This document shows positions 4,181 through 64,000 of a DNA stretch of 64,000 nucleotides, piece after piece. Every line of letters begins with the position of its first letter. Position 1 is the first letter of the stretch. The stretch is from Guillardia theta CCMP2712 (lineage: Eukaryota > Protista > Cryptophyta): contig NW_005434628.1 of assembly GCF_000315625.1 (NCBI RefSeq), positions 425,310 to 489,309 of the forward strand, read 5' to 3'. The translations under genes and the position numbers were made by a program. The notes beneath the pieces were generated by a model. It did no database searches. It was not told the DNA's origin and saw only the letters and a program-made list of their open reading frames with translations.

Positions 4181-5280
4181 TTCGATGGCCACGTGACAGC
4201 ACCGGGGTGCTTTTGCCAAAGGTCGTGTCCTCGCATCTTTTTGCGTAAAAGTCGGATATCACGGTCCGGGGGCCTGGTCATTTGTAGGGCCTGTGCGATT
4301 CATTGAATCTTATCCGAACAGCTGAGTGTTGTCGGACGTCCGGGCCGGCGACGGTAAGTAGCACCCGGAGCTTCCGGCGACCGCCGCACGTCGGACCGTA
4401 CTCTCCGAGTGACCCGGGCCGTCTGCCAACGTGTCACGGACAGTCGGACCGTACTGAGTGACTCCGAGTGACGGACTGGCGGCGCGGCGCCCCTGCGGCT
4501 GAGGCGGTTAAACTTTGGCGGTAAAAAAAAGGGTCCGACACTGACTCGGTTACGGGCCCGGCGGCCTCCGAGTGGCCGCGTGACGGCCGGGCCGGGCGGC
4601 GCCGGACCGAGGTTGGCCGGATCCGATCATCCTGCCCGGTTCGGCCGGGCCCGGCGTCGCCGGAGTCGCCGTACGGTATGAAGGCAGGCAGTATCAGGTT
4701 CACGGGTGGCAGGAGCGGTCAGTACCGTACCGTACCGCACGCCGCCGTACGGTACGCCCGGCTGGGATGATTCAGTCTACACGGTCAACACCCGGGGGCC
4801 TGGCAGCCGGCCGCTCCCTTGGCCGGGGCCCGCCGGGGCCGGCCGCCCGCCCGGCGGTGCCCGCTCGCCCCCGGGCCGCCGCCCGACCCACTNNNNNNNN
4901 NNNNNNNNNNNNNNNNNNNNNNNNNNNNNNNNNNNNNNNNNNNNNNNNNNNNNNNNNNNNNNNNNNNNNNNNNNNNNNNNNNNNNNNNNNNNCGGCGCGG
5001 TAGGACGCCTTGGGGTGCAGGGCTGGTCGCCTAGGTAAGAGGTGTGGAGTTGGCAGCGTGGAGTGCGCGAGGGCGGGGTGGCTCTTCCCTGCTCCGCGTC
5101 CGAAAGGGAGCGTGGTCTCTGTCGAGAGCGCACGGCCCTAGGCCGTGTCTCGCTGGGCTGGCTCGGTCTGGCGGAAGGGGGGGGGGCCGCCGGCGCGGCG
5201 GGGGCCGGGGCCCGCACGCCCGCCGGCCCGCCGGCCCGGACTCACTGAGTGAGTCAGGGCCTCGCCGCAACTTGCCTGGC

Positions 5281-39509: not shown

Positions 39510-41996
39510 ATGGCTGAAGCGACGGAGAAGAAAACCCCGAAGAAAGGTGAGGGAGGGAGGGAGGGAGAGAGAGAGAGAGAGAGAGAGACGGAGGAAGGGA
39601 GGGAGAACGAGCGAGGACGGAGAGGGAGTGGGGAAAGAGGAGAGGGGAGAGAGAGGANNNNNNNNNNNNNNNNNNNNNNNNNNNNNNNNNNNNNNNNNNN
39701 NNNNNNNNNNNNNNNNNNNNNNNNNNNNNNNNNNNNNNNNNNNNNNNNNNNNNNNNNNNNNNNNNNNNNNNNNNNNNNNNNNNNNNNNNNNNNNNNNNNN
39801 NNNNNNNNNNNNNNNNNNNNNNNNNNNNNNNNNNNNNNNNNNNNNNNNNNNNNNNNNNNNNNNNNNNNNNNNNNNNNNNNNNNNNNNNNNNNNNNNNNNN
39901 NNNNNNNNNNNNNNNNNNNNNNNNNNNNNNNNNNNNNNNNNNNNNNNNNNNNNNNNNNNNNNNNNNNNNNNNNNNNNNNNNNNNNNNNNNNNNNNNNNNN
40001 NNNNNNNNNNNNNNNNNNNNNNNNNNNNNNNNNNNNNNNNNNNNNNNNNNNNNNNNNNNNNNNNNNNNNNNNNNNNNNNNNNNNNNNNNNNNNNNNNNNN
40101 NNNNNNNNNNNNNNNNNNNNNNNNNNNNNNNNNNNNNNNNNNNNNNNNNNNNNNNNNNNNNNNNNNNNNNNNNNNNNNNNNNNNNNNNNNNNNNNNNNNN
40201 NNNNNNNNNNNNNNNNNNNNNNNNNNNNNNNNNNNNNNNNNNNNNNNNNNNNNNNNNNNNNNNNNNNNNNNNNNNNNNNNNNNNNNNNNNNNNNNNNNNN
40301 NNNNNNNNNNNNNNNNNNNNNNNNNNNNNNNNNNNNNNNNNNNNNNNNNNNNNNNNNNNNNNNNNNNNNNNNNNNNNNNNNNNNNNNNNNNNNNNNNNNN
40401 NNNNNNNNNNNNNNNNNNNNNNNNNNNNNNNNNNNNNNNNNNNNNNNNNNNNNNNNNNNNNNNNNNNNNNNNNNNNNNNNNNNNNNNNNNNNNNNNNNNN
40501 NNNNNNNNNNNNNNNCCTCCTCCTCTCCTCCTCTCCTTCTGTTTCCCCTTCGCTCTCCTCATCGCTCACTGCAGGCTCAAGTTTGCTGCTGCAGTCACTC
40601 TTGGCTGCTCCATTGGAGACATGTTCCATGCCAGTACAGTCCCTTTTCTCTTCGATTCTCTTCCTCCTCCTCGTCCTCCTCCTCCTCGTCCTCCTCCTCC
40701 TCCTCGTCCTCGTCCTCCTCCTCCTCCTCCTCTTCCTCCCTCTCTCTCTCCTCCCTCCCTCTCTCCTCCCTCCTCTCTTCTCCATCCCTCCCCTCCTTCC
40801 TGCCTCTTCTCCTCACATTTTTCTGTTTTGATTTTCCCCTTACAGGCATTCACGTACACGCTCGACCCCTGCTGGAGAAGAACATCTCACCAGGTGCCAA
40901 CCTATTTCTCTTCTCCCTTATCGTTTTCCCCTCCTCCTCCTCTTCTCAGTTATGCTCTCAGAGTATCACAAGTGGATTGATCCCGGCATCAAGTATTCAT
41001 CGCAAGGTATTCACTCACTTATTCCTGCTCCTCCTGCTCCACCTGGTACTCCGCTTCCTGCTTCTGCTTCCTCTTCCTCCCCGCCCCCCCCCTCCTCGCC
41101 TCCTCGTCCTACTCAGCTTCTGTCAGCTGTGGGCGTCTTCCTCGCTTGGATCCTTCAGAGAATCATGAGCGCGATCCACTGCTCGCTCCGAGGAGCCTTC
41201 CTCTTCGTCTCATCCTCGCAGGTGATGATGATGGCTAGAGGGAGAGAGGGAGGAGGAGGAGGAGGAGGGAGAAAGGTAGAGGAGGAGGAGGAGGAGGAGG
41301 AGGAGGAGGAGGAGGGGGGGGGGGGGGAAGGGCGACGGTTTGTAACTCCGCTGTCGCAGGACGCGCTTGTTAAGCTGGGATATATCTCCTCCCCCGTGCT
41401 CGAGAAGGTAAGGAAAACGGAAAAAAAGAGTCAGGAGGAGGAGGAGGAGGAGGAGGAGGAGGAGGAGGAGGAAAAAAGGGCTGGTGGGGAGGGGGGTGGG
41501 GGGGAAAGAGGAAGTTAAGGAAGGGATTCAAGTTGAAGGACAAAGGCGGTGGGGTAGCGAAAATGAGGGAGTGGATAGTCGGAGGTGTGGGAGAGAGGGA
41601 GAGGGAGAGAGGAACGTGAAGGAGTGAGGAGCTGTTTGCTTCAGGATTCGACTCTCTTCAGCGGGGCTGTCATGCTCTTAGCTCTCATCGGCTTCCTCAG
41701 TCAGGTTGACCCGCCTATCCCTCCATCTTCTTCCTCCGTCTTCATCCTCCCTCCTCCCCCTCGCCCCCCCCTCCTCTATCCCTCAGTAACTTCCTCCCTC
41801 TCCCTCTCCTTCCTCCCCCTCCCTCCCTTCCTCCTCATTTTGCTGACGCTTCTTCAGGCCTCCTACGGCTTTGGCCTGCCCTTCCCCCTCAACCTTCTCT
41901 TCCTTCCGGTGACTTGACGCGACTCGAGCGAGCATGACGGGTGTGCAGGTTTACGTGCTGGAGTTTGTGATCACCCAGATGATCGGGAGTGTGTGA
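39510..41996 (+). CDS. Uncharacterised multi-pass membrane protein, multi-exon, partly in a gap
   Basis: Short exons LKFAAAVTLGCSIG, EYHKWIDPGIKYSSQ, VGVFLAWILQRIMSAIHCSLRG, GAVMLLALIGFLSQ, YGFGLPFPLNLLFLP and VLEFVITQMIGSV*. Putative first exon MAEATEKKTPKK lies before the gap. Confidence 0.65.
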
Positions 41997-44206: not shown

Positions 44207-44311
44207 TGAGANNNNNNNNNNNNNNNNNNNNNNNNNNNNNNNNNNNNNNNNNNNNNNNNNNNNNNNNNNNNNNNNNNNNNNNNNNNNNNNNNNNNNNNNN
44301 NNNNNNNNNNN

Positions 44312-47774: not shown

Positions 47775-50700
47775 GGCGGCAAGATCCGAGTGAAAACGTC
47801 AAAGTTGAATCGGATTTGTCATGCAGGACCAGAGATGTCGCAACGTCAACAAACCCGAACAACAACTGCAAGATTGACGATTCCTCTATCTTTCGGGAGC
47901 AGAAGGATTCAGATCCATTCAAAGGTCACGCTTGACTACATGTCCACCCATTCCTTTCAAGCTACCATCTTCCTGCAACAACTCCTATTCCGAGCCCTCC
48001 TCAAGTCTGGTGAACCAGGGGAACGCAGGTTCCAACTGGGAGATTCAATCAGAACAGCAGCCTCTGACGATCGCTAGTCTTCTGCTTCACTGACTTTCCT
48101 GTGGAGCTTTATCAGCTCCCTGCATGCCGCTGCGACTTTCGACCTATCCCGCTGCCCGGCCTCCCCGCCATTATCACAGTTATCGACGCCTCGAGGCGAA
48201 GTTCTACCTGAAGCAGGTTTTAACTTTAAAAGTTTAAATTGGGTATAGTTTTTAGAGGGTTGTTGTTGGAGCCGAGAAGAAATCGATTTAGTACCTGATA
48301 AAAACATTGGTACAAAACTAAATACAAAATTATGGTACTGTATCAGAAACCTTTCTGGAACCACATCGAGTGTTGAGCGGCCCAAAACATTTTAAAAGGC
48401 CTCCAAAATCAGTCTAAGTAGAAGGAGAGATAGGTTCCTTTTTACAATCAGGTTTTTTAATGTACTAATTTTGAATTTTCAAAATACTTATTGAACAACT
48501 TGGTAGATAATGATTGAGTTTAAAACAAAGTTGTTGTTTTTAAAAGTCAGTCAAGCCCTTGTATGTCTCGAAAGGATTGGGGGAGCAGGAGCTTGGTGGA
48601 GTATGGTAGGGTGGGCAGTGAGAAATTGTTGGTAGGGGTGGTATGGAATGAGACTATACCATACCAAGTCAAGGGTAGTCTATGGGAAATCAATGGGTAA
48701 TCGATGAACTGTGAAGTTGCAGGAGCACTGGTGGGGTGGTTCTGAAAGAATCGATGTGGTGGGGTACCCTTAAAAGAGAATGATTGGTAGGGGGTGAGTT
48801 TTGAGCATTATGGGGTGGTAGGGGTACTTCGGTACTGGTTTCCTCGGGAAATAGTTGTGACAGCTGGGGTGTCTTGACTGGGAGAATACCGAGAAAAGGG
48901 GGGTAGGGTGATTCAAGGTTGACTGGTAGCAGGGCTGGGGTGTTTGGACGGAGGGGTGTAGTCCAAGAGGTTATGGTTTAGGTGGGTAGGGTAGTTGGAA
49001 TGAACGGCCCTCCATTTTAATAAATACTTTTATACCCCTATTAACCCTACCCTCTATTCCTGAGGGGATTAGCCTAGTTTACAGGGGTGTTTGGCTTGTT
49101 ACGATCGTGGGTAGGGTGGGAGTCATTTGCAGGATTACTGGGAGAGAATGGGTGGGGTAGTATGAGGTCCAATAAGGGGTGGTGCCAAATGCAACACGGT
49201 GTCCTCGTGGGCAAGGGAAAGAAGGGTGGGTGGTTGTAGATTTAGGGGGTACAAAGAACTATGATTTCCATCAAAATGGGTAGGTGGGGTGTACATTGGG
49301 GGTAGGGGGTGGTACTGCAGGTTTTCTATGAGTGGGGTAACAGCAGGTGGGGGTCATCATTGAACAGCACAAATTGCCGCCGGAGGGTCTTTGAAGGGGC
49401 ACCAATTTGAATGTTTGAAATATTCTTGAGAAATTGATAATCATGCTCCAAGAGTTGGAAAAAGCTTTAGAAATTGGAAGAATAATTTCAACGATGAAGA
49501 GCCAATAGCAAATCGATCGAAATTCTGAAGAGAGTGGGGTAGGGGGTCCTTTGGTTTGCCTTAAGACCCCATCTACCATACTAGAAAGAAGGGGTATCAA
49601 GGTGGAAGGGATGAGGAAATGGGTGGGGTAGTGAGGAGGTTAGAACGAAGCAATGCTGGACAGAAATAGAACAGGAGATGAAGCAGCCGGGGAAGAATGG
49701 CAGCAAAGATTGAGGAAGATTCTGGTGAAGAAGTGAAGATATACTAGGGAAGGAGGTGGACAGTAGGTTGCAAGGAGGAGAAGGGAAGAGCAGCAGTCTT
49801 CTAAGAAGAACGGGAGCCTCGTCAACAAAGTGAGCATGAAATGCGAGGATTTCGCGAATATCACACAGCATGAGAAGAAGTCGTGGGGTGGGAGTAGGAA
49901 GAATAGATAGACCATATCATGTCATGTGCCTCTGTGTCTGTCAGCCACCGCTTAGAAGTGAGCTTAGTAGAGTAAGTGAAAGTGGAAGACCAATAGTTGT
50001 CTACTGGCAGACGCAGGATGAAAGGAGCAGGAGGACTAGAAAGAACATTTGATGCATTACTTTATTGTGATTCAAAATCAAATGAATCGTTTGGTAACTT
50101 TTGCCACCAATGTGGTCACAGTTGGCATCGTCCAGATAGATTTATTTTATCTGTATCAACAATCTAGTGTGGACATGGTGTGTGAGGTTATGAAGTGTCC
50201 TTTTGCAATTGAAAAGCTGGACATGGGAGGAAAACATAGATGCATTTTCAGAGAGGATTTTGTGTAATGAGCCCAAGAAGAGTTAGAATACGTGGATAAG
50301 AAGCTGAAGGCTGAATCATCTGAGCTCATCCTGCAGACATTGCAAACCTTCTGGCGGCACGCCAAGAAACTTGTCAAAGATTTTTCAGAATTTAAGTGAA
50401 GCCTTCGTGGAAGTTGGGGGAATGGCGAAAACGGACTGCAAGGGTGGCAGAAAGGGCATCCTGAGCAAGGTAAGGAGAGGTGAAGGGACATAAAAAGGGG
50501 GGGGGGGGGGGGGGGGGGTCCGTGGGTAGAGGGGGGTTAGGGGTAAGGAAAGGGAAAGGTAAAACGGTTNNNNNNNNNNNNNNNNNNNNNNNNNNNNNNN
50601 NNNNNNNNNNNNNNNNNNNNNNNNNNNNNNNNNNNNNNNNNNNNNNNNNNNNNNNNNNNNNNNNNNNNNAGGGGGGGGTGGCCTGGGGTTGAAGGAGGAA

Positions 50701-57760: not shown

Positions 57761-58801
57761 CGCATCACCACGAACCTAGCGGTCTCAGGTCTCAAACTGT
57801 GCTGACTAGAGAGCTTCAAACCTAACAAAGCCTTGCATGCTGAGATCTGATGCTGGCTACAGCAGCGGATGGTCTTACAGCGGCATCGTTGGAGGGCTTT
57901 GGTGCTACGTGCCGGCGTGTAGGGGAGACATGAGTCGGGCGTGTACGAGGTTGAAAACATTTCAACCCTCTGAAATGAAAGTTAAAATACATGTAAAGGC
58001 CTAGCAGAAATGATAACTAAACTGCACTGGTACTCTTTGGAGGTATCTCTTGCTGCCGTTGAAAACTTGTTTGAATTCACACGCCACCCCAAAAAAACTT
58101 TCTCGAAAAGAAGAGTGGAAATTAACGAAAGGGCTAAAAGTGAACGGCATGAATGAAGAAAAAAATCTACTTGAAGTTTCAGTCAAATATGTCTCCTAAG
58201 GCCTGGCATTAGGCATGTTTACAGAAGGTACAACCGCTCAAAGACCTTTCGGTAGAAGATTGATACACAAATACATTGGAGTCCTACTAAGGTCTTCACA
58301 ACAAAGTCACTAATGAGGCGGCAGTGGGTGTCACGAAATTGACCTTAGCTCGGGAAAGGATGCAGAAGATAGGATCGTGGGCAGGACATTTCTGACATTT
58401 AGTTGGGATGTCATCTGTAGATCCGTGAAGGCGATTCAGAACCTGTTTCATGTGACACATCGGATGGCAAGATGATCATATGTGGGCTGGTGTTCCCTGG
58501 AGGATTTGAAACGCAAGGTTGCAAAAAACAACGATTCAGTCACGGGCATGCTGAAGAAGATTCTGGAAATAGGGCAACATGGAAATAGGGCAACATGCGA
58601 TAGAACACCAGGAACAGGAACAGGACCCTAACCTCGGAGACGTAAACACTGGCGCACTGAGTCGGAGCACTGTGCAGTGCGTCAATGGCGATCGGCGAGC
58701 TGGCGTTCGTCACACTCAGGCTGATCAAGCGGATCTGAAAGCGATGCGAATTTCTGGAGAAGCGAATGTTCCAAAAGTGCATGGAATCTGTGTCACTCTG
58801 G

Positions 58802-58841
58802 TTTAGGGTTTAGGGTTTAGGGTTTAGGGTTTAGGGTTTAG
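58802..58841 (+). repeat. Telomeric repeat tract (TTTAGGG)5+
   Basis: Directly visible. Confidence 0.97.
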
Positions 58842-59608
58842 AGGCCGCCCCTTCCCGAGGCAGGCCGCCCCTTCCCGAGGCAGGCCGCCCCTTCCCGAGG
58901 CAAGGCCGCCCCTTCCCGAGGCAGGCCGCCCCTTCCCGAGGCAGGCCGCCCCTTCCCGAGGCAGGCCGCCCCTTCCCGAGGCAGGCCGCCCCTTCCCGAG
59001 GCAGGCCGCCCCTTCCCGAGGCAGGCCGCCCCTTCCCGAGGCAGGCCGCCCCTTCCCGAGGCAGCCTGGCCCCTTCCCGAGGCAGGCCGCCCCTTCCCGA
59101 GGCATGCACATCCGCGGCGCGTAGGGGGAGCACAAGGGGACCGGAGGAAGCTGCGAGCAAGAGGTTTGTATCGTTCAAAAAGCTTTCTAAGCATGGTACT
59201 ACAGTATGATGAGAGCGTTCGCAACCTGCTGTATCGGAGATCATGCCAATACACGCAGGGTGAGCGCTCTGGAGGCCACGTCGAGGAGGCCGCCGACCTC
59301 GTCGAGAAGGTGAAGAGCTTCACCAAGCGTTATCCGAATAGTCGGACAGCTTATGCTTGCAGAGCTGAGGGGGGATGCACTCCCGACGCTATCGCTGAAG
59401 CCATCCGCTCGACATGTTGGCAGGCGAGACGCGACCTGTTTGAAGACTCTCTGAGCGAATGGAGCTCAGAGTCGAGAGCATGGTTTATTCAACAGATGGA
59501 GGAGGCCAAGAAGCAGAATGTCGAGACATACATCGGCACCGAAGGCACCGAGGGGACCTCCTTCATCTCCATGAATCTCCTAGGGATTTCCTCGATGTTT
59601 GTTCGACA
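58842..59608 (+). mobile_element. Telomere-associated element copy A, 3'-truncated
   Basis: 13 x ~20-nt AGGCCGCCCCTTCCCGAGGC (58842-59103), uORF, then an ORF1 N-terminus closely similar to copy B, cut off directly by TTTAGGG repeats. Confidence 0.85.
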
Positions 59609-59647
59609 AGGGTTTAGGGTTTAGGGTTTAGGGTTTAGGGTTTAGGG
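59609..59647 (+). repeat. Telomeric repeat tract AGGG(TTTAGGG)5
   Basis: Directly visible. Confidence 0.97.
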
Positions 59648-62387
59648 CGCCGTTATTTTCGGCAGCAGCGCCGTTATTTTCGGCAGCAGCGCCGTTATTT
59701 TCGGCAGCAGGCGCCGTTATTTTCGGCAGCAGCGCCGTTATTTTCGGCAGCGCGCCGTTATTTTCGGCAGCAGCGCCGTTATTTTCGGCAGCAGGCGCCG
59801 TTATTTTCGGCAGCATGGCTCCTCGTCAGGTGTAGGGGAAGCCGCCAGGGCGCCAAGGAAGCTGCAAGCAAGAGGTTTGTATACTTCAAATAGCTTTCTA
59901 AGTATGGTCCTTCAGTATGATGAAAATGTTCGCAACCTGCTGTATCGGAGATCATGCCAATACACGCAGAGCGGACTTGTGGATGCCTCTGTCCTCGAAG
60001 CTGATCTCGTCGAGAGAGTGAAGAGCTTCGCGAAGCGTTATCCGAACAGCAGGACAGCCCAGGCTTGCAAGGCTGTGGAGGGATGCACCCCCGACGCTAT
60101 CGCAGAAGCCATCCGCTCGACATGTCAGCAGGCACGACGTGAGCTTCTGCAAGAAGCGATGACTGGATGGAGTGACGCATCCAGAGAGTGGTTTATGCAG
60201 CAGATTGAAGAAGCCAAGAAGGAGAAGGTCGAGACATACACCGCCTCAGCAGGCAACGAGGTGACTCCCTTCATCTCCATGACTCTCCTGGGCATCTCCT
60301 CGGTGTATGTCAACCATGAAGAGAAGCTGAAGAAGAAATTCGAAGAGATCGGACTGATCGTAGACTCAGTGCAAGAGAGTAAAGCAATCATGTGGAAGGC
60401 TCCGTATAGACCCGAGATAGCGAGTGCTGAGGAGATCCCGGTGACTGTTTCCTTCCTCCGCAATGCACAAGCGGAGAAGCTCTGGCAGGGAAGAGAGGAC
60501 TTCGCGATCGATGGTCGCAAGTTCACAGCTGTACATGTGAGCATCGTGCACGATCGATCTTTCAAGATTCGAGCCAAGAGAGGACCCTGGGGCAAAGGGG
60601 GCAGCTTGGCAGAGCTGACTCACCTACTAACCTTGGGCGGCATGACAACGGCTGAGATAGCTGCCGTCTATCGCTATCAGCTGCTGCGCCAGTCCCTTGC
60701 AGCGGTCCAACTCCAGCCGCTGGCAGGCATGCTGGTCGCTGGGGCGCCAGGCCAGCAAGTCCACAAAGGCTTAGGTCAGAAAGGCTTCGTCGCTGTAGGG
60801 GCCAACGTCATCTGGAGACAGAGGGAGGTGGAGTGGATCGTCTCCTCGAGCTGCCCAGAGGCGAATGATACAGCATTTCGAGCTTTCCGAGAGAGCGAAG
60901 CGATGGAGGGAGTACACCTGACTCTGTTCAGCGAGGACCCGAAGATCAGAGAGGCGCTCGCAGTCGAGTTGACAGCCGATCGCTTTGTGTCCAGAAATAA
61001 GTTGAAGAAGGCATCAAGGATGCAGAAGAAGGCAGGCGGCAAGGACGGCAAGGAGATCAAGATCATCATCAAGTCGACGGCGGCATCTGGTCGCTTCACG
61101 AGGAAGGAGATGGAGGGGCTGTGCAACGGCGGCAACACGTCCATCGCAAGAGTCAAGAGAGTCTTGTTGGAGATCGCTAACAGGCTCGAGATCAAAGTTG
61201 AAGGCATCGACATGGAGGAGGATTTGAACACTAAGTCCTGGAACGGGTCCAAGCTATGCATCCTCCTCGGCTCCACGGAGGATGCTCGACGCATGATGAA
61301 GGAGCTGCCCTTCTATCTCGAAGGCGCAGCAACCAAGCTCGAAGCAGTCGGCTTCGACAAGGAGCCTGAGGCGGCTGGTCAGCGGGGCACCAGCGACGCA
61401 GCGCAGCGACAGGAGGAGAGCGAGGGAGAGTGGCTGGAGTTTACAGACCTGGAGAGGATCACAATGGAGGCAGCATCTCCGTCAAGCCAAGAGGACATGC
61501 AGCTCGTCAGCGAGCTGTCAGCAGTCATCGAAGATGCAGCTTCTTTGAACGAGGCAGGGACGAGCGAGCCGATCAAGCTGGTCCTGGACAAGGCCGTTGG
61601 CAACCTCCACGACACCTTCTACTCTCCGGGGAGCCTGGAGTTCATGTCGCTGGGAGAGTGGGCGAAGATGCCAGAGGAGCAGGGAGTTGGGCGCAACGTT
61701 CTCAAGGAGAAGCTGGGGAAGTGGCTGCAGAGCAAGCGCTGGACTCGCGTGCAAGGAGAGAGCAAGAAGGCAAGGAGGGGCAGCGCGTTCTCGCCACGGG
61801 CAACGGCAGCTGCTGAGCTTGAGCAGGAGGCGGAGAGCGACGACATAGAGCGTCGATCTCTTAGCTTCCTGTTCATAGCACTGAGTAAATTCGCAGAGAT
61901 GCATGTGCTGGCCTGCTCGCTGAAGGTGGACAAGAAGGACCGACTGCGAGTGGAGATGAGGGAAGATGACGAAGAAGAGGAAGACATGGAGGAAGAGCAA
62001 GGCGAGGGCGAGGAAGAAGACAGGGCGAGCCCGTACCGAGCTTGAGCTGAGCTCAAGGTAAGGAGAGAAGGTAGGAGGCGACCGAAGGCCAAGGTGAGGA
62101 GAGGCAACTCTCCTGACTGAGGCTGAGGAAGCTGAATGGAGGAGGAGTAGGTGGCGACCGAAGGCCAAGGTGAGGAGAGGCAACTCTCCTGACTGAGGCT
62201 GAGGAAGCCAAGAGAAGACAGAAGAAGTAAAGAGTAGAAAGACGCCTCAGAAGCAGGGTTCGCATTGTAGGCCGTGTACTCCCAGTGCTCGAGCGCCTCT
62301 TTAGACTAGGATCAAATTGCATAAGCCCACAACGAGGCCGAGCAACATTCTAGCATTCTAATAAACTCACATAATAATAATAATAAT
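59648..62387 (+). mobile_element. Telomere-associated element copy B, ~2.74 kb, ORF1 only (non-autonomous non-LTR-retrotransposon-like)
   Basis: 8 x ~21-nt GCGCCGTTATTTTCGGCAGCA, uORF, 722-codon ORF, a 3' region with a ~56-bp direct repeat, AATAAA (62360-62365) and an (ATA)n tail joined to AGGG(TTTAGGG)n. Confidence 0.8.
59877..62045 (+). CDS. ORF1-like protein with RRM-like segments and an acidic tail
   Basis: Intronless 722-aa frame (first in-frame ATG at 59904). RRM-like pattern LLGIS..EEKLKKKFEEIG..VTVSF..AEKLW..FAIDGRKF. No RT, endonuclease or CCHC motif was recognised. Confidence 0.75.
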   Translation: MYTSNSFLSMVLQYDENVRNLLYRRSCQYTQSGLVDASVLEADLVERVKSFAKRYPNSRTAQACKAVEGCTPDAIAEAIRSTCQQARRELLQEAMTGWSDASREWFMQQIEEAKKEKVETYTASAGNEVTPFISMTLLGISSVYVNHEEKLKKKFEEIGLIVDSVQESKAIMWKAPYRPEIASAEEIPVTVSFLRNAQAEKLWQGREDFAIDGRKFTAVHVSIVHDRSFKIRAKRGPWGKGGSLAELTHLLTLGGMTTAEIAAVYRYQLLRQSLAAVQLQPLAGMLVAGAPGQQVHKGLGQKGFVAVGANVIWRQREVEWIVSSSCPEANDTAFRAFRESEAMEGVHLTLFSEDPKIREALAVELTADRFVSRNKLKKASRMQKKAGGKDGKEIKIIIKSTAASGRFTRKEMEGLCNGGNTSIARVKRVLLEIANRLEIKVEGIDMEEDLNTKSWNGSKLCILLGSTEDARRMMKELPFYLEGAATKLEAVGFDKEPEAAGQRGTSDAAQRQEESEGEWLEFTDLERITMEAASPSSQEDMQLVSELSAVIEDAASLNEAGTSEPIKLVLDKAVGNLHDTFYSPGSLEFMSLGEWAKMPEEQGVGRNVLKEKLGKWLQSKRWTRVQGESKKARRGSAFSPRATAAAELEQEAESDDIERRSLSFLFIALSKFAEMHVLACSLKVDKKDRLRVEMREDDEEEEDMEEEQGEGEEEDRASPYRA

Positions 62388-62481
62388 AGGGTTTAGGGAT
62401 TAGGGTTTAGGGTTTAGGGTTTAGGGTTTAGGGTTTAGGGTTTAGGGTTTAGGGTTTAGGGTTTAGGGTTTAGGGTTTAGG
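62388..62481 (+). repeat. Telomeric repeat tract, ~13 units with one ATTAGGG variant
   Basis: Directly visible. Confidence 0.97.
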
Positions 62482-64000
62482 AGGATCCCTTTATCTGAGG
62501 CAGGAGGATCCCTTTATCTGAGGCATGTAGGATCCCTTTATCTGAGGCATGAGAGGATCCCTTTATCTGAGGCATGCAGGATCCCTTTATCTGAGGCATG
62601 CAGGATCCCTTTATCTGAGGCATGCAGATCAGCGGGGTCCCTGCGTGGTAGAGCAAGAGTCGCCAGGAACGCAGGAAGCTCGGGAAACCATCGAGAATGC
62701 TTCGAAACATGTGGCCAATATCTATTGTGAACCCTGACGAGATCGTGCAGTACCGTACCTCCAGCTACCTCAAGAGGCAGACGGAAGCTGCCACGATGCC
62801 GTCATCAGCCGAACTGATGCGGAGACTGGATGAATTCGCAAGGCAGAACCCCAAAAGCAGGACGAGCAAAGCTCTGAAAGCCAAAGAAATATCCTTGGAA
62901 GCCTTAGCCGAAGCCATCAGTCAGACATGCAGCTTTGCTGAACCCTCGTCACTGGAGAATCCGAAAGGGCTCAGGCAGTGGGGTGACGATGTCAGGCAGT
63001 GGTACCTGTCAGAGTTCCAAGCTGACAGACAAAGGCAGATGGAGGCCAGATCATATGATGACCAGGGCACAAGTGTGCAGACGATTACCATGAAGGTACT
63101 TGGGATCCCTGCATACTTTTCCAGACAGGTGGAAAACTTATGCCTCAAGCTTGAAGAGCAAGGCTTGATCGTCGATCAGACGCAAGACAGCAGGAGCCTG
63201 ATCTTCAAGGCTCCCTTGAAGCCTGACCTTGTGCAGGCAGCGGAGATCCCAGCAGTGATCACATTTGTCCGCAATGAGGCGGCTGAGAAACTCTGGAAAG
63301 GAGAAGGTACCTTCAAGGTGGCAGGCAGGAGGATCCTAGCAGTGAACCCAGCAGCCAACCCACCGATCTCGTTCAAGATGCGGCCAAAGAAGGAGAACAT
63401 GGGCAGAGTTGGAATCCTAGCTGAGGTGGCCCAACTCCTGATGCTCAACGATTCGAGCACAGGTGACATATGTGAGATCTACAGGCAGCTATGCCTGAAG
63501 CAGGGATTAGCGATCATTGATCTGATCCCAAACGCGGGAATGACAGTGAACCTCCCCCCCAAGAGGAACCTACCGCCAAAGAAGGTGTTCGCTGCGGTAG
63601 GAATAGAAACAGTCAACCAGAACAGAGAGGTCGACTGGATCGCAACGTGCTCGAGCCTTGAAGCAGCGGACATCGTTCTTCAAGCATTCGATCGACATGG
63701 AAAGGATCGTGCAGGAGTCACTTTGGGACTGGTCTCAGAGAATGACAAAATACTGAAATGGTTCTCAGTGCAGATGGAAGCAACGGCGCTGCACAAGAAT
63801 ATGAAGAATGCGGTGCGACAAGAGGGCACGGCAATGGCAACGGGAGCAGAGATGCTGTACTCGGTACAAATCTCCTCTCCTGTGCCGTCAGGGAAGTTCT
63901 CCCGAAATGAGATTGAAAAAATCTGCGCAAGTGATGAAACGGGCAGAGCAAAAGTCATCCGAAAGCGAGTTCGGAGGGGCTGTCGGCCTTGCTTTTGTAT
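62482..64000 (+). mobile_element. Telomere-associated element copy C (diverged subfamily), runs off the window
   Basis: 6 x ~24-nt AGGATCCCTTTATCTGAGGCATGC, then uORF MQISGVPAW*. An open frame from 62652 is homologous to copy B (LAEAISQTC, LEEQGLIVD, KAPLKP, AEIPAVITFVRNEAAEKLWKG, REVDWI, SGKFSRNEIEKIC). Confidence 0.85.

Follow-up and report, generated by a model that had tools for sequence, protein, structure and literature searches.

What is repeated, each time behind a short telomere-type tract, at positions 58800-64000 of a 64,000-nucleotide stretch of the genome of the cryptophyte Guillardia theta CCMP2712, and how did it get there? This stretch (contig NW_005434628.1, forward strand, positions 425,310 to 489,309; C46:425310-489309), which at its full length is called the window here, belongs to scaffold C46 (583,384 bp) of a genome of 87 Mb in 669 scaffolds. 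We conclude, with a probability of about 85%, that retrotransposons of G. theta without long terminal repeats (non-LTR retrotransposons or long interspersed elements, LINEs), specific for telomere repeats, are arranged here head to tail in an array. For members that contain only a first open reading frame (ORF1), copying presumably depends in trans on the ORF2 protein of autonomous members, as judged from sequence comparison.

Organization of the array in the window

The layout of the array was obtained by direct reading of 58000-64000 combined with Tandem Repeats Finder and a pattern scan. Three co-oriented cassettes, designated A, B and C, were found at 58800-64000 with a short TTTAGGG-type tract ahead of each, in agreement with a preliminary description of this DNA. 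A two-unit telomere pattern gave 17 matches in the 64-kb window, all on the + strand and all inside the three tracts, compared to 0 matches in shuffled sequence (0 expected). The features of the array are as follows:

58800-58841, + strand: telomere-type tract of 6 units that follows at once on the unique sequence, which stops at 58799, and marks the inner limit of the array
58842-59104, + strand: copy A 5′ tandem array, 20-nt unit x 13.1 (96% matches), A-subfamily-specific unit
59105-59192, + strand: copy A 5′ untranslated region (UTR), 79% identical to the B 5′ region
59193-59609, + strand: copy A ORF1, first 139 codons only, 3′-truncated and capped by telomere repeats
59610-59647, + strand: telomere-type tract between A and B, about 5.6 units
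59647-59815, + strand: copy B 5′ tandem array, 21-nt unit x 8
59816-59903, + strand: copy B 5′ UTR
59904-62045, + strand: copy B ORF1, 713 aa, intronless
62046-62370, + strand: copy B 3′ UTR with a conserved TTAGAC block; AATAAA at 62360-62365
62371-62388, + strand: (ATA)6, microsatellite tail that closes copy B at its 3′ end
62389-62481, + strand: telomere-type tract between B and C, about 13.6 units, one of them variant
62482-62627, + strand: copy C 5′ tandem array, 24-nt unit x 6.1, C-subfamily-specific unit
62628-62696, + strand: copy C 5′ UTR
62697-64000, + strand: copy C ORF1, first 434 codons, open at the window end

Copy B was shown by its layout and by Pfam to be what the preliminary description had stated, namely a single intronless ORF followed by AATAAA and an (ATA)n tail on a telomere tract; no Pfam reverse transcriptase (RT) or endonuclease domain was detected in it, and its ORF1 had no match in Pfam at all. 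From the stump of copy A we infer an eroded end that was healed by telomerase. Copies A and B showed 79% DNA identity over their common part and the ORF1 families to which they belong are about 59-61% identical in protein, whereas B and C showed 36% protein identity. The strong divergence of C described previously was thus confirmed, but A and B are less closely related than had been suggested.

The 5′ tandem arrays recur in other members of the family. The 20-nt unit of copy A was found at another end (locus L020), the 21-nt unit heads many B copies in numbers from less than 1 to about 40, and the 24-nt unit is present at the head of nine other C copies. In these arrays (58842-59104, 59647-59815, 62482-62627 and sister loci), the unit contains, subfamily by subfamily, a GC-rich 6-bp palindrome (e.g., GGCGCC, GGATCC, GCCGGC, or GGGCCC), and most units finish in ...GGCA or ...GCA, with unit numbers from less than 1 to about 40 among the loci. 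The arrays may serve as promoter monomers, as a protein-binding site or as microhomology for joining of the 5′ end. A tentative and rather doubtful idea is that reverse transcription or end joining creates or resizes the subfamily-specific arrays, which would then not be inherited promoter monomers. The 3′ UTR of copy B includes a direct duplication of 62 nt (62071-62132 and 62147-62208), which occurs in one or two copies among family members.

Distribution, orientation and subfamilies in the genome

A six-frame search detected at least 63 copies of B ORF1 in the genome, all 97-100% identical and 61 of them without stops. Thirty-one of 32 minus-strand copies were located within 25 kb of the start of a scaffold. 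Among plus-strand copies, for which the count was restricted to the 14 on scaffolds of known length, 13 were located within 14 kb of the scaffold end, and the sole exception was the copy of the window itself. The strand of the telomere repeats agreed with that of the element at every locus fetched (42/42), i.e., the sense strand is the G-rich strand. At some scaffold ends long telomere tracts were found distal to the copies, e.g., 73 units closing C73. Position at scaffold ends and strand agreement together show that the SART-like orientation and the telomere association, both proposed from the window, hold for the family. The expectation that ORF1 homologues throughout the genome would be flanked by telomere repeats was likewise borne out, with nearly all of the hits at scaffold ends.

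Several subfamilies coexist, as had been noted, and ORF1 of four types (A, B, C, and D) was found. C-type ORF1s at scaffold ends showed 98-99% identity to copy C of the window, besides one subtype with 92%, and a D-type ORF1, also at scaffold ends, is 41-42% identical to copy C. The full-length A-type ORF1 is P0015-like and has 716 aa. ORF1-only elements, which comprise B, A and short forms of C, are the most frequent members and about 2.7 kb long (B unit, 2.76 kb). What they keep is a 5′ tandem array, ORF1, a 3′ UTR and an (ATA)n or (CTA)n tail. Autonomous members, which belong to the C and D subfamilies, are about 10 kb long and contain an ORF1 of roughly 715 aa and an ORF2 of about 2500 aa. 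Short C elements, spaced by about 2.66 kb on C72, consist of ORF1 and the C 3′ end and thereby show a route to ORF1-only forms by internal deletion.

B-like copies were also detected in other samples. L053 (Logan SRR20819194) is 91% identical and has the same junction between tract and 5′ array, and L054, a metagenome contig (ENA ERZ930064), contains a 5′-truncated, tailed copy with 89% identity in non-telomeric DNA.

Relatives carrying RT and endonuclease

The best matches of the genome to the Pfam RT family RVT_1 (PF00078), with up to 126 bits, were found on the same strand as C- and D-type ORF1 and about 5.3 kb further downstream. Between ORF1 and the RT, a domain of the apurinic/apyrimidinic endonuclease type (APE; PF03372, Exo_endo_phos) was found above the cut-off. 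The order of domains in ORF2 was determined from the coordinates of Pfam and protein matches. Downstream of D-type ORF1, the APE, the RT and a C-terminal block are contained in single open frames of 2482-2504 aa (C15, C64, C7, and C176). In C-type copies a Peptidase_C48 domain (PF02902) exceeded the Pfam cut-off between ORF1 and the APE, and none was detected by Pfam in D-type ORF2.

The C-terminus of ORF2, as read from L045 and L004, contains a CCHC motif followed by PD ... E ... K-x2-KY, which is the signature of a restriction-like endonuclease (RLE). In the frames that contain the RT, this block follows it about 2.3 kb further downstream:

L045:3320-4282, - strand: CCHC/RLE-like block, motifs read by eye

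An AlphaFold2 (AF2) model of the ORF2 C-terminus was unusable, with a mean predicted local distance difference test score (pLDDT) of 36, and gives no evidence either way. Searches of the genome for RNase H (PF00075 and PF13456) gave one unrelated locus and none in ORF2. The N-terminus of ORF2 matched three short fragments only in a HMMER search of 1.84 billion representatives, the C-terminus matched one metagenome fragment in a word-based search, and a full ORF2 protein was not found in the protein libraries searched.

Copies A and B themselves do not contain an RT, and copy C is of a subfamily whose full members carry ORF2. Since the RT- and endonuclease-bearing relatives have a homologous ORF1, a like 5′ array and like 3′ motifs, the ORF1-only copies are regarded as non-autonomous members. 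This supports the previous proposal of a telomere-targeted non-LTR family that includes members reduced to ORF1.

The ORF1 protein

Homologues of ORF1 were detected only in G. theta (about 45 gene models annotated as 'hypothetical protein'), Hanusia phi, one Logan sample, one ENA metagenome and a transcriptome labelled as Heterocapsa. No zinc knuckles were seen on reading the sequence, and an Atlas feature search with ORF1 gave no usable match. The AF2 model of ORF1, built from an alignment of nine sequences, was poor (pLDDT 55). Within this low-confidence model, residues 381-491 could be superposed on RNA recognition motifs (RRMs) with Z 7-9.6 and a root-mean-square deviation of 2-3 Å, and the neighbours of ORF1 in Foldseek and Atlas were, with marginal scores, almost all multi-RRM proteins. 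The model thus makes it plausible, and does not establish, that ORF1 is RRM-like at fold level and an RNA-binding-like protein; the RRM-like ORF of the preliminary description found this structural support and none from Pfam.

Among the 28 distinct B ORFs of the genome, the ratio of nonsynonymous to synonymous substitution rates (dN/dS) of ORF1 was 0.13, and it was 0.15 in comparison with the 91%-identical L053 copy. By these sequence comparisons ORF1 is under purifying selection.

Two ORF1 homologues (P0013 and P0037) are derived from transcriptomes. P0013, from EukProt and labelled Heterocapsa arctica, has 461 aa and is 99% identical to G. theta B ORF1 in spite of its dinoflagellate label. 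It is probably cross-contamination or prey RNA and as such an incidental sign of ORF1 transcription. Sequencing runs guessed to be RNA by the index contained 56-74% of the B words, compared to 3-13% for adjacent unique DNA, which suggests, and does not prove, that B is expressed.

Junctions and signatures of retrotransposition

A total of 62 non-redundant telomere tracts was catalogued, with lengths from 2 to 73 units (median 6). Twenty-five of the 62 were preceded by a canonical AATAAA and a tail abutting the GGG of the repeat, (ATA)n in 21 cases and (CTA)n in four. About three quarters (at least 47/62) were followed by a subfamily-specific array of 19-24-nt units that starts after ...TTTAG(G) or within a unit. 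About 12 tracts adjoin different unique sequences and are the inner boundaries of different scaffold ends, comparable to the boundary at 58799 in the window. Terminal repeats are absent and the 3′ end is a microsatellite tail after AATAAA, so that the ends are those of LINEs.

At least nine copies are cut at internal positions and capped by repeats, i.e., they are 3′-truncated in the same way as copy A. As the 3′ end of the element faces the chromosome tip, this is what erosion followed by healing by telomerase predicts. A match to the RNA-binding domain of telomerase reverse transcriptase (TERT) is present in the genome. Copies truncated at the 5′ end were found as well (L004, L002, L017, and L054), and in L004 an ORF2 fragment directly follows the tract. 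Two chimeric structures were observed: in L010/L047 (C321), 1.5 C-type 5′ units run straight into a B 3′ end of which only the last 45 nt are present, and in L045 (C8) the reading frame of a C-type ORF2 N-terminus continues into B ORF1 at an internal point. Both look like candidate products of template switching.

Two conserved blocks recur at the 3′ end in B, A and short C copies and in autonomous ones. From these blocks, which are the only evidence for it here, we infer a putative recognition signal common to all for the RT.

A number of points weigh against the reading of the region as an array of telomere-specific LINEs. The family is known here from sequence alone, and neither a retrotransposition event nor a transcript end nor any enzyme activity was seen. 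The ORF1s of B and A are just 33-36% identical to those of the autonomous C and D subfamilies, and since no closely matched autonomous partner was found, mobilization in trans is suggested only by the common 3′ motifs. The RLE-like block consists of motifs recognized by eye, for which sequence searches in Pfam and PDB were blank. The target is a 7-nt repeat in which a target-site duplication is unscorable; the junction phases allow a duplication of 1-2 nt. The array of the window is 94 kb away from the end of C46. Finally, one junction, consisting of 7 units, a run of 11 T and a truncated 5′ unit, is common to three scaffolds at 99.4% identity:

L008:1-1473 (scaffold C184), L024:2549-4022 (C289), and L027:2739-4202 (C225), oriented coordinates: common-junction loci

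Either array segments are copied between ends too or the assembly contains duplicate haplotigs. A junction found unchanged on three scaffolds shows that arrays are spread by recombination or duplication as well, and this raises the question of whether it could be the only process. The elements would then be a Y′-like subtelomeric gene family, i.e., host or selfish genes between interstitial telomere tracts that were multiplied and kept alike purely by recombination between chromosome ends (break-induced replication or unequal exchange) and never retrotransposed. In yeast, Y′ arrays consist of tandem subtelomeric units with short telomere tracts between them, and the anatomy in G. theta matches this; gene conversion could, besides, explain the 97-100% identity of copies. 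Such a process does not account for units with exact ends and a microsatellite tail after AATAAA, for tract lengths (2-73 units) and combinations of neighbours that vary from junction to junction, for 5′-truncated copies, one of which is tailed in non-telomeric DNA, for homologous ORF1s physically linked in the same orientation to APE and RT, or for the template-switch-like chimera in L010/L047, and we consider it very unlikely. A pure recombination origin was rejected on the grounds of exact ends, tails, truncations and linkage to ORF2.

Proposed cycle of insertion, erosion and healing

With its sense strand on the G-rich strand, the element has a tail that meets GGG of the repeat and a 5′ end preceded by ...TTTAG or ...TTTAGG. 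The element endonuclease may nick double-stranded telomere repeats in their C-rich strand, always at one phase, and the 3′-OH freed in this way would prime reverse transcription at the 3′ end of the RNA (target-primed reverse transcription, as in SART1). The 5′ junction would form inside or at the edge of the 5′ array of 19-24-nt units, leaving variable numbers of units. Since the 3′ end is turned towards the tip, erosion of the terminus would take off 3′ ends, telomerase would re-cap the stump and new elements could insert into the new repeats, so that the array grows; the anatomy that this process would leave was observed. Recombination between chromosome ends would copy array segments as well.

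A different route to chromosome ends is attachment without an endonuclease, in the style of HeT-A, TART and Athena, where the terminal 3′ overhang primes copying of the element RNA. The location of elements at chromosome termini and the capping of eroded copies by telomere repeats would be consistent with this. Priming by the 3′ overhang of the G strand, however, puts the antisense strand of the element on the G strand, and here it is the sense strand at every locus. In addition, ORF2 encodes an APE domain and the phase of the junction within the repeat is fixed. We therefore regard this route as extremely unlikely, and end priming of the HeT-A/Athena type was rejected because the orientation is wrong.

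Setting of the array on scaffold C46

The preliminary description had placed the array at a chromosome end. This holds for the family, whose members point outward at scaffold termini. The array of the window is internal on C46 as assembled, and would be a physical end only if the scaffold is misjoined after it. A run of 3906 N starts exactly at 64001, directly after copy C, and the 3.2 kb past this gap contained unrelated sequence without an RT-like frame. As full C elements are about 10 kb long in sister copies, copy C is either truncated within the gap or the scaffold is misjoined there.

These observations bear on the possibility that the array is an assembly artefact in which reads from different ends were joined as chimeras and the order A-B-C is not real. 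The older, gapped scaffold assembly with its gap of 3906 N at the window end, the missing rest of the C element past this gap and internal or facing arrays on several other scaffolds, which suggest misjoins, are in favour of it. On the other hand, no gap interrupts the contig sequence at the A-B or the B-C junction, the same grammar is seen at more than 40 loci, each with a different unique boundary, the independent Logan contig L053 from another sample has the same tract-to-array junction, and run X2, a run other than the likely source, holds 0.6 of the words of the junction between unique sequence and copy A. An artefactual array is thus unlikely, and the part most likely to be wrong is the scaffold join across the gap.

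The window includes five assembly gaps (N runs at 1129-1228, 4893-4992, 39658-40515, 44212-44311, and 50570-50669). They make C46 a patchwork scaffold, which bears on the trust that can be placed in the join after 64000. Internal arrays of opposite orientation occur on one and the same scaffold in C8 (about 1,162-1,178 kb, facing) and C72 (about 422-458 kb, diverging); they suggest end-to-end misjoins of scaffolds or real rearrangements.

The real end of C46 (L040:1747-4075; C46 581,056-583,384) consists of a degenerate telomere tract and, behind it, another B copy with 98.4% identity, which is cut off by the scaffold end. An old B-like relic with 86-89% identity was found 10 kb inside the present scaffold end (L039:3468-4146; C46 about 572,777-573,455). 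Its parts are 1.5 telomere units, a degenerate 5′ unit and a stretch of 0.67 kb from the 5′ UTR and ORF1, after which it switches sharply to unrelated DNA, i.e., it is 3′-truncated. The relic looks like a former chromosome end and suggests that such ends can become internal.

Comparison with known elements

Lescot et al. (2016; PMC5029228) described 'cryptophyte Dualen' (RandI) LINEs from transcriptomes, with a C48 peptidase, an AP endonuclease, an RT, a CCHC motif and a restriction-like endonuclease. A relative of 2543 aa was reported, and in Dualen-1_GCr the C48 peptidase is N-terminal to the APE (PMC5029228). The Guillardia family resembles these elements in its cryptophyte host group, its giant ORF and its order of domains (for the RLE, at motif level), a likeness of domain layout. 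It differs in having a separate ORF1 and in that RNase H was not found in it. Telomeres, 5′ tandem arrays and ORF1-only derivatives are not mentioned in PMC5029228. The statement that this is not a described family was supported with regard to telomere targeting and ORF1-only partners, neither of which was found in a report, but not with regard to the RT-bearing layout, which matches cryptophyte Dualen.

A parallel in target use is with SART1 and TRAS1 of Bombyx mori (R1 clade), which insert at a fixed phase into double-stranded telomere repeats that are still kept by telomerase, with a dependence on the endonuclease that may apply to the Guillardia family too. SART1 also has its sense strand on the G strand. 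In contrast to the ORF2 of R1 elements, which has APE and RT only, the Guillardia family has C48 and an RLE-like block; its tail is a trinucleotide microsatellite instead of poly(A), its ORF1 does not contain CCHC knuckles and ORF1-only members are abundant.

With HeT-A of Drosophila (and TART and TAHRE), the family shares a dominant gag/ORF1-only element that would rely on the RT of another element, and head-to-tail terminal arrays that erode. The 3′ end is distal in Guillardia, so that 3′ and not 5′ ends erode, and the copies are inserted among telomerase repeats, which they do not replace; a TERT match is present and the partner encodes an endonuclease.

MoTeR1 and MoTeR2 of Magnaporthe oryzae are similar in their insertion into telomere repeats, their arrays with short tracts between and their short non-autonomous partner with common ends. 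They differ in being CRE-clade elements with an RLE only, and MoTeR2 does not have a gag-like ORF.

HAL1 of mammals is also an ORF1-only derivative of a LINE, but it is dispersed and not telomeric. Other retroelements gather at the chromosome ends of protists, algae or rotifers. Zepp of Chlorella accumulates at chromosome ends, but by L1 nesting into itself and without targeting of telomere repeats. Athena/Terminons (Penelope-like elements) accumulate at chromosome ends too, with the difference that they have no endonuclease and the opposite orientation.

To our knowledge, telomere-repeat-specific LINEs are known from few lineages: the SART/TRAS elements of insects (R1 clade), the MoTeR elements of a fungus (CRE clade) and elements of Giardia. 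A literature search, which did not cover Repbase or Dfam, found no published telomeric retroelements of G. theta and no report of telomere targeting or ORF1-only partners for Dualen. What is new here is the presence of autonomous partners with a Dualen-like layout, the fixed phase of insertion, the signature of 3′ erosion and healing, and selection on ORF1.

Implications for Guillardia theta and its chromosome ends

With an identity of just 33-36% to C- and D-type ORF1, the A/B ORF1-only lineage is old and not the result of a fresh deletion. It is a tentative idea, which we regard as rather doubtful, that this lineage is more than a parasite of the autonomous elements, namely a long-lived, selected partner of the chromosome end and that the ends are kept by a mixed system of telomerase and retroelements. 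Divergence of this order, strong purifying selection, the outnumbering of autonomous elements and the behaviour as an outward-facing buffer that is eroded and re-capped would fit with it. If true, mixed end maintenance in G. theta would be a mirror image of that in Drosophila, independently evolved in a clade of LINEs with two endonucleases.

At the level of the genome, the family explains why dozens of G. theta scaffolds break off at the points they do, and about 50 gene models annotated as 'hypothetical protein' (GUITHDRAFT_...) are transposon ORF1s. The family would represent a further independent origin of telomere-targeted LINEs, in a cryptophyte and in a Dualen-like lineage with two endonucleases, where a gag-only partner prevails at the ends, like HeT-A in flies. 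It could reveal which of two endonucleases gives telomere specificity. Because the orientation is opposite to that in Drosophila, erosion would eat 3′ ends and telomerase would heal them, and the arrays may thus provide a natural test of the interplay between erosion, telomerase and retrotransposition.

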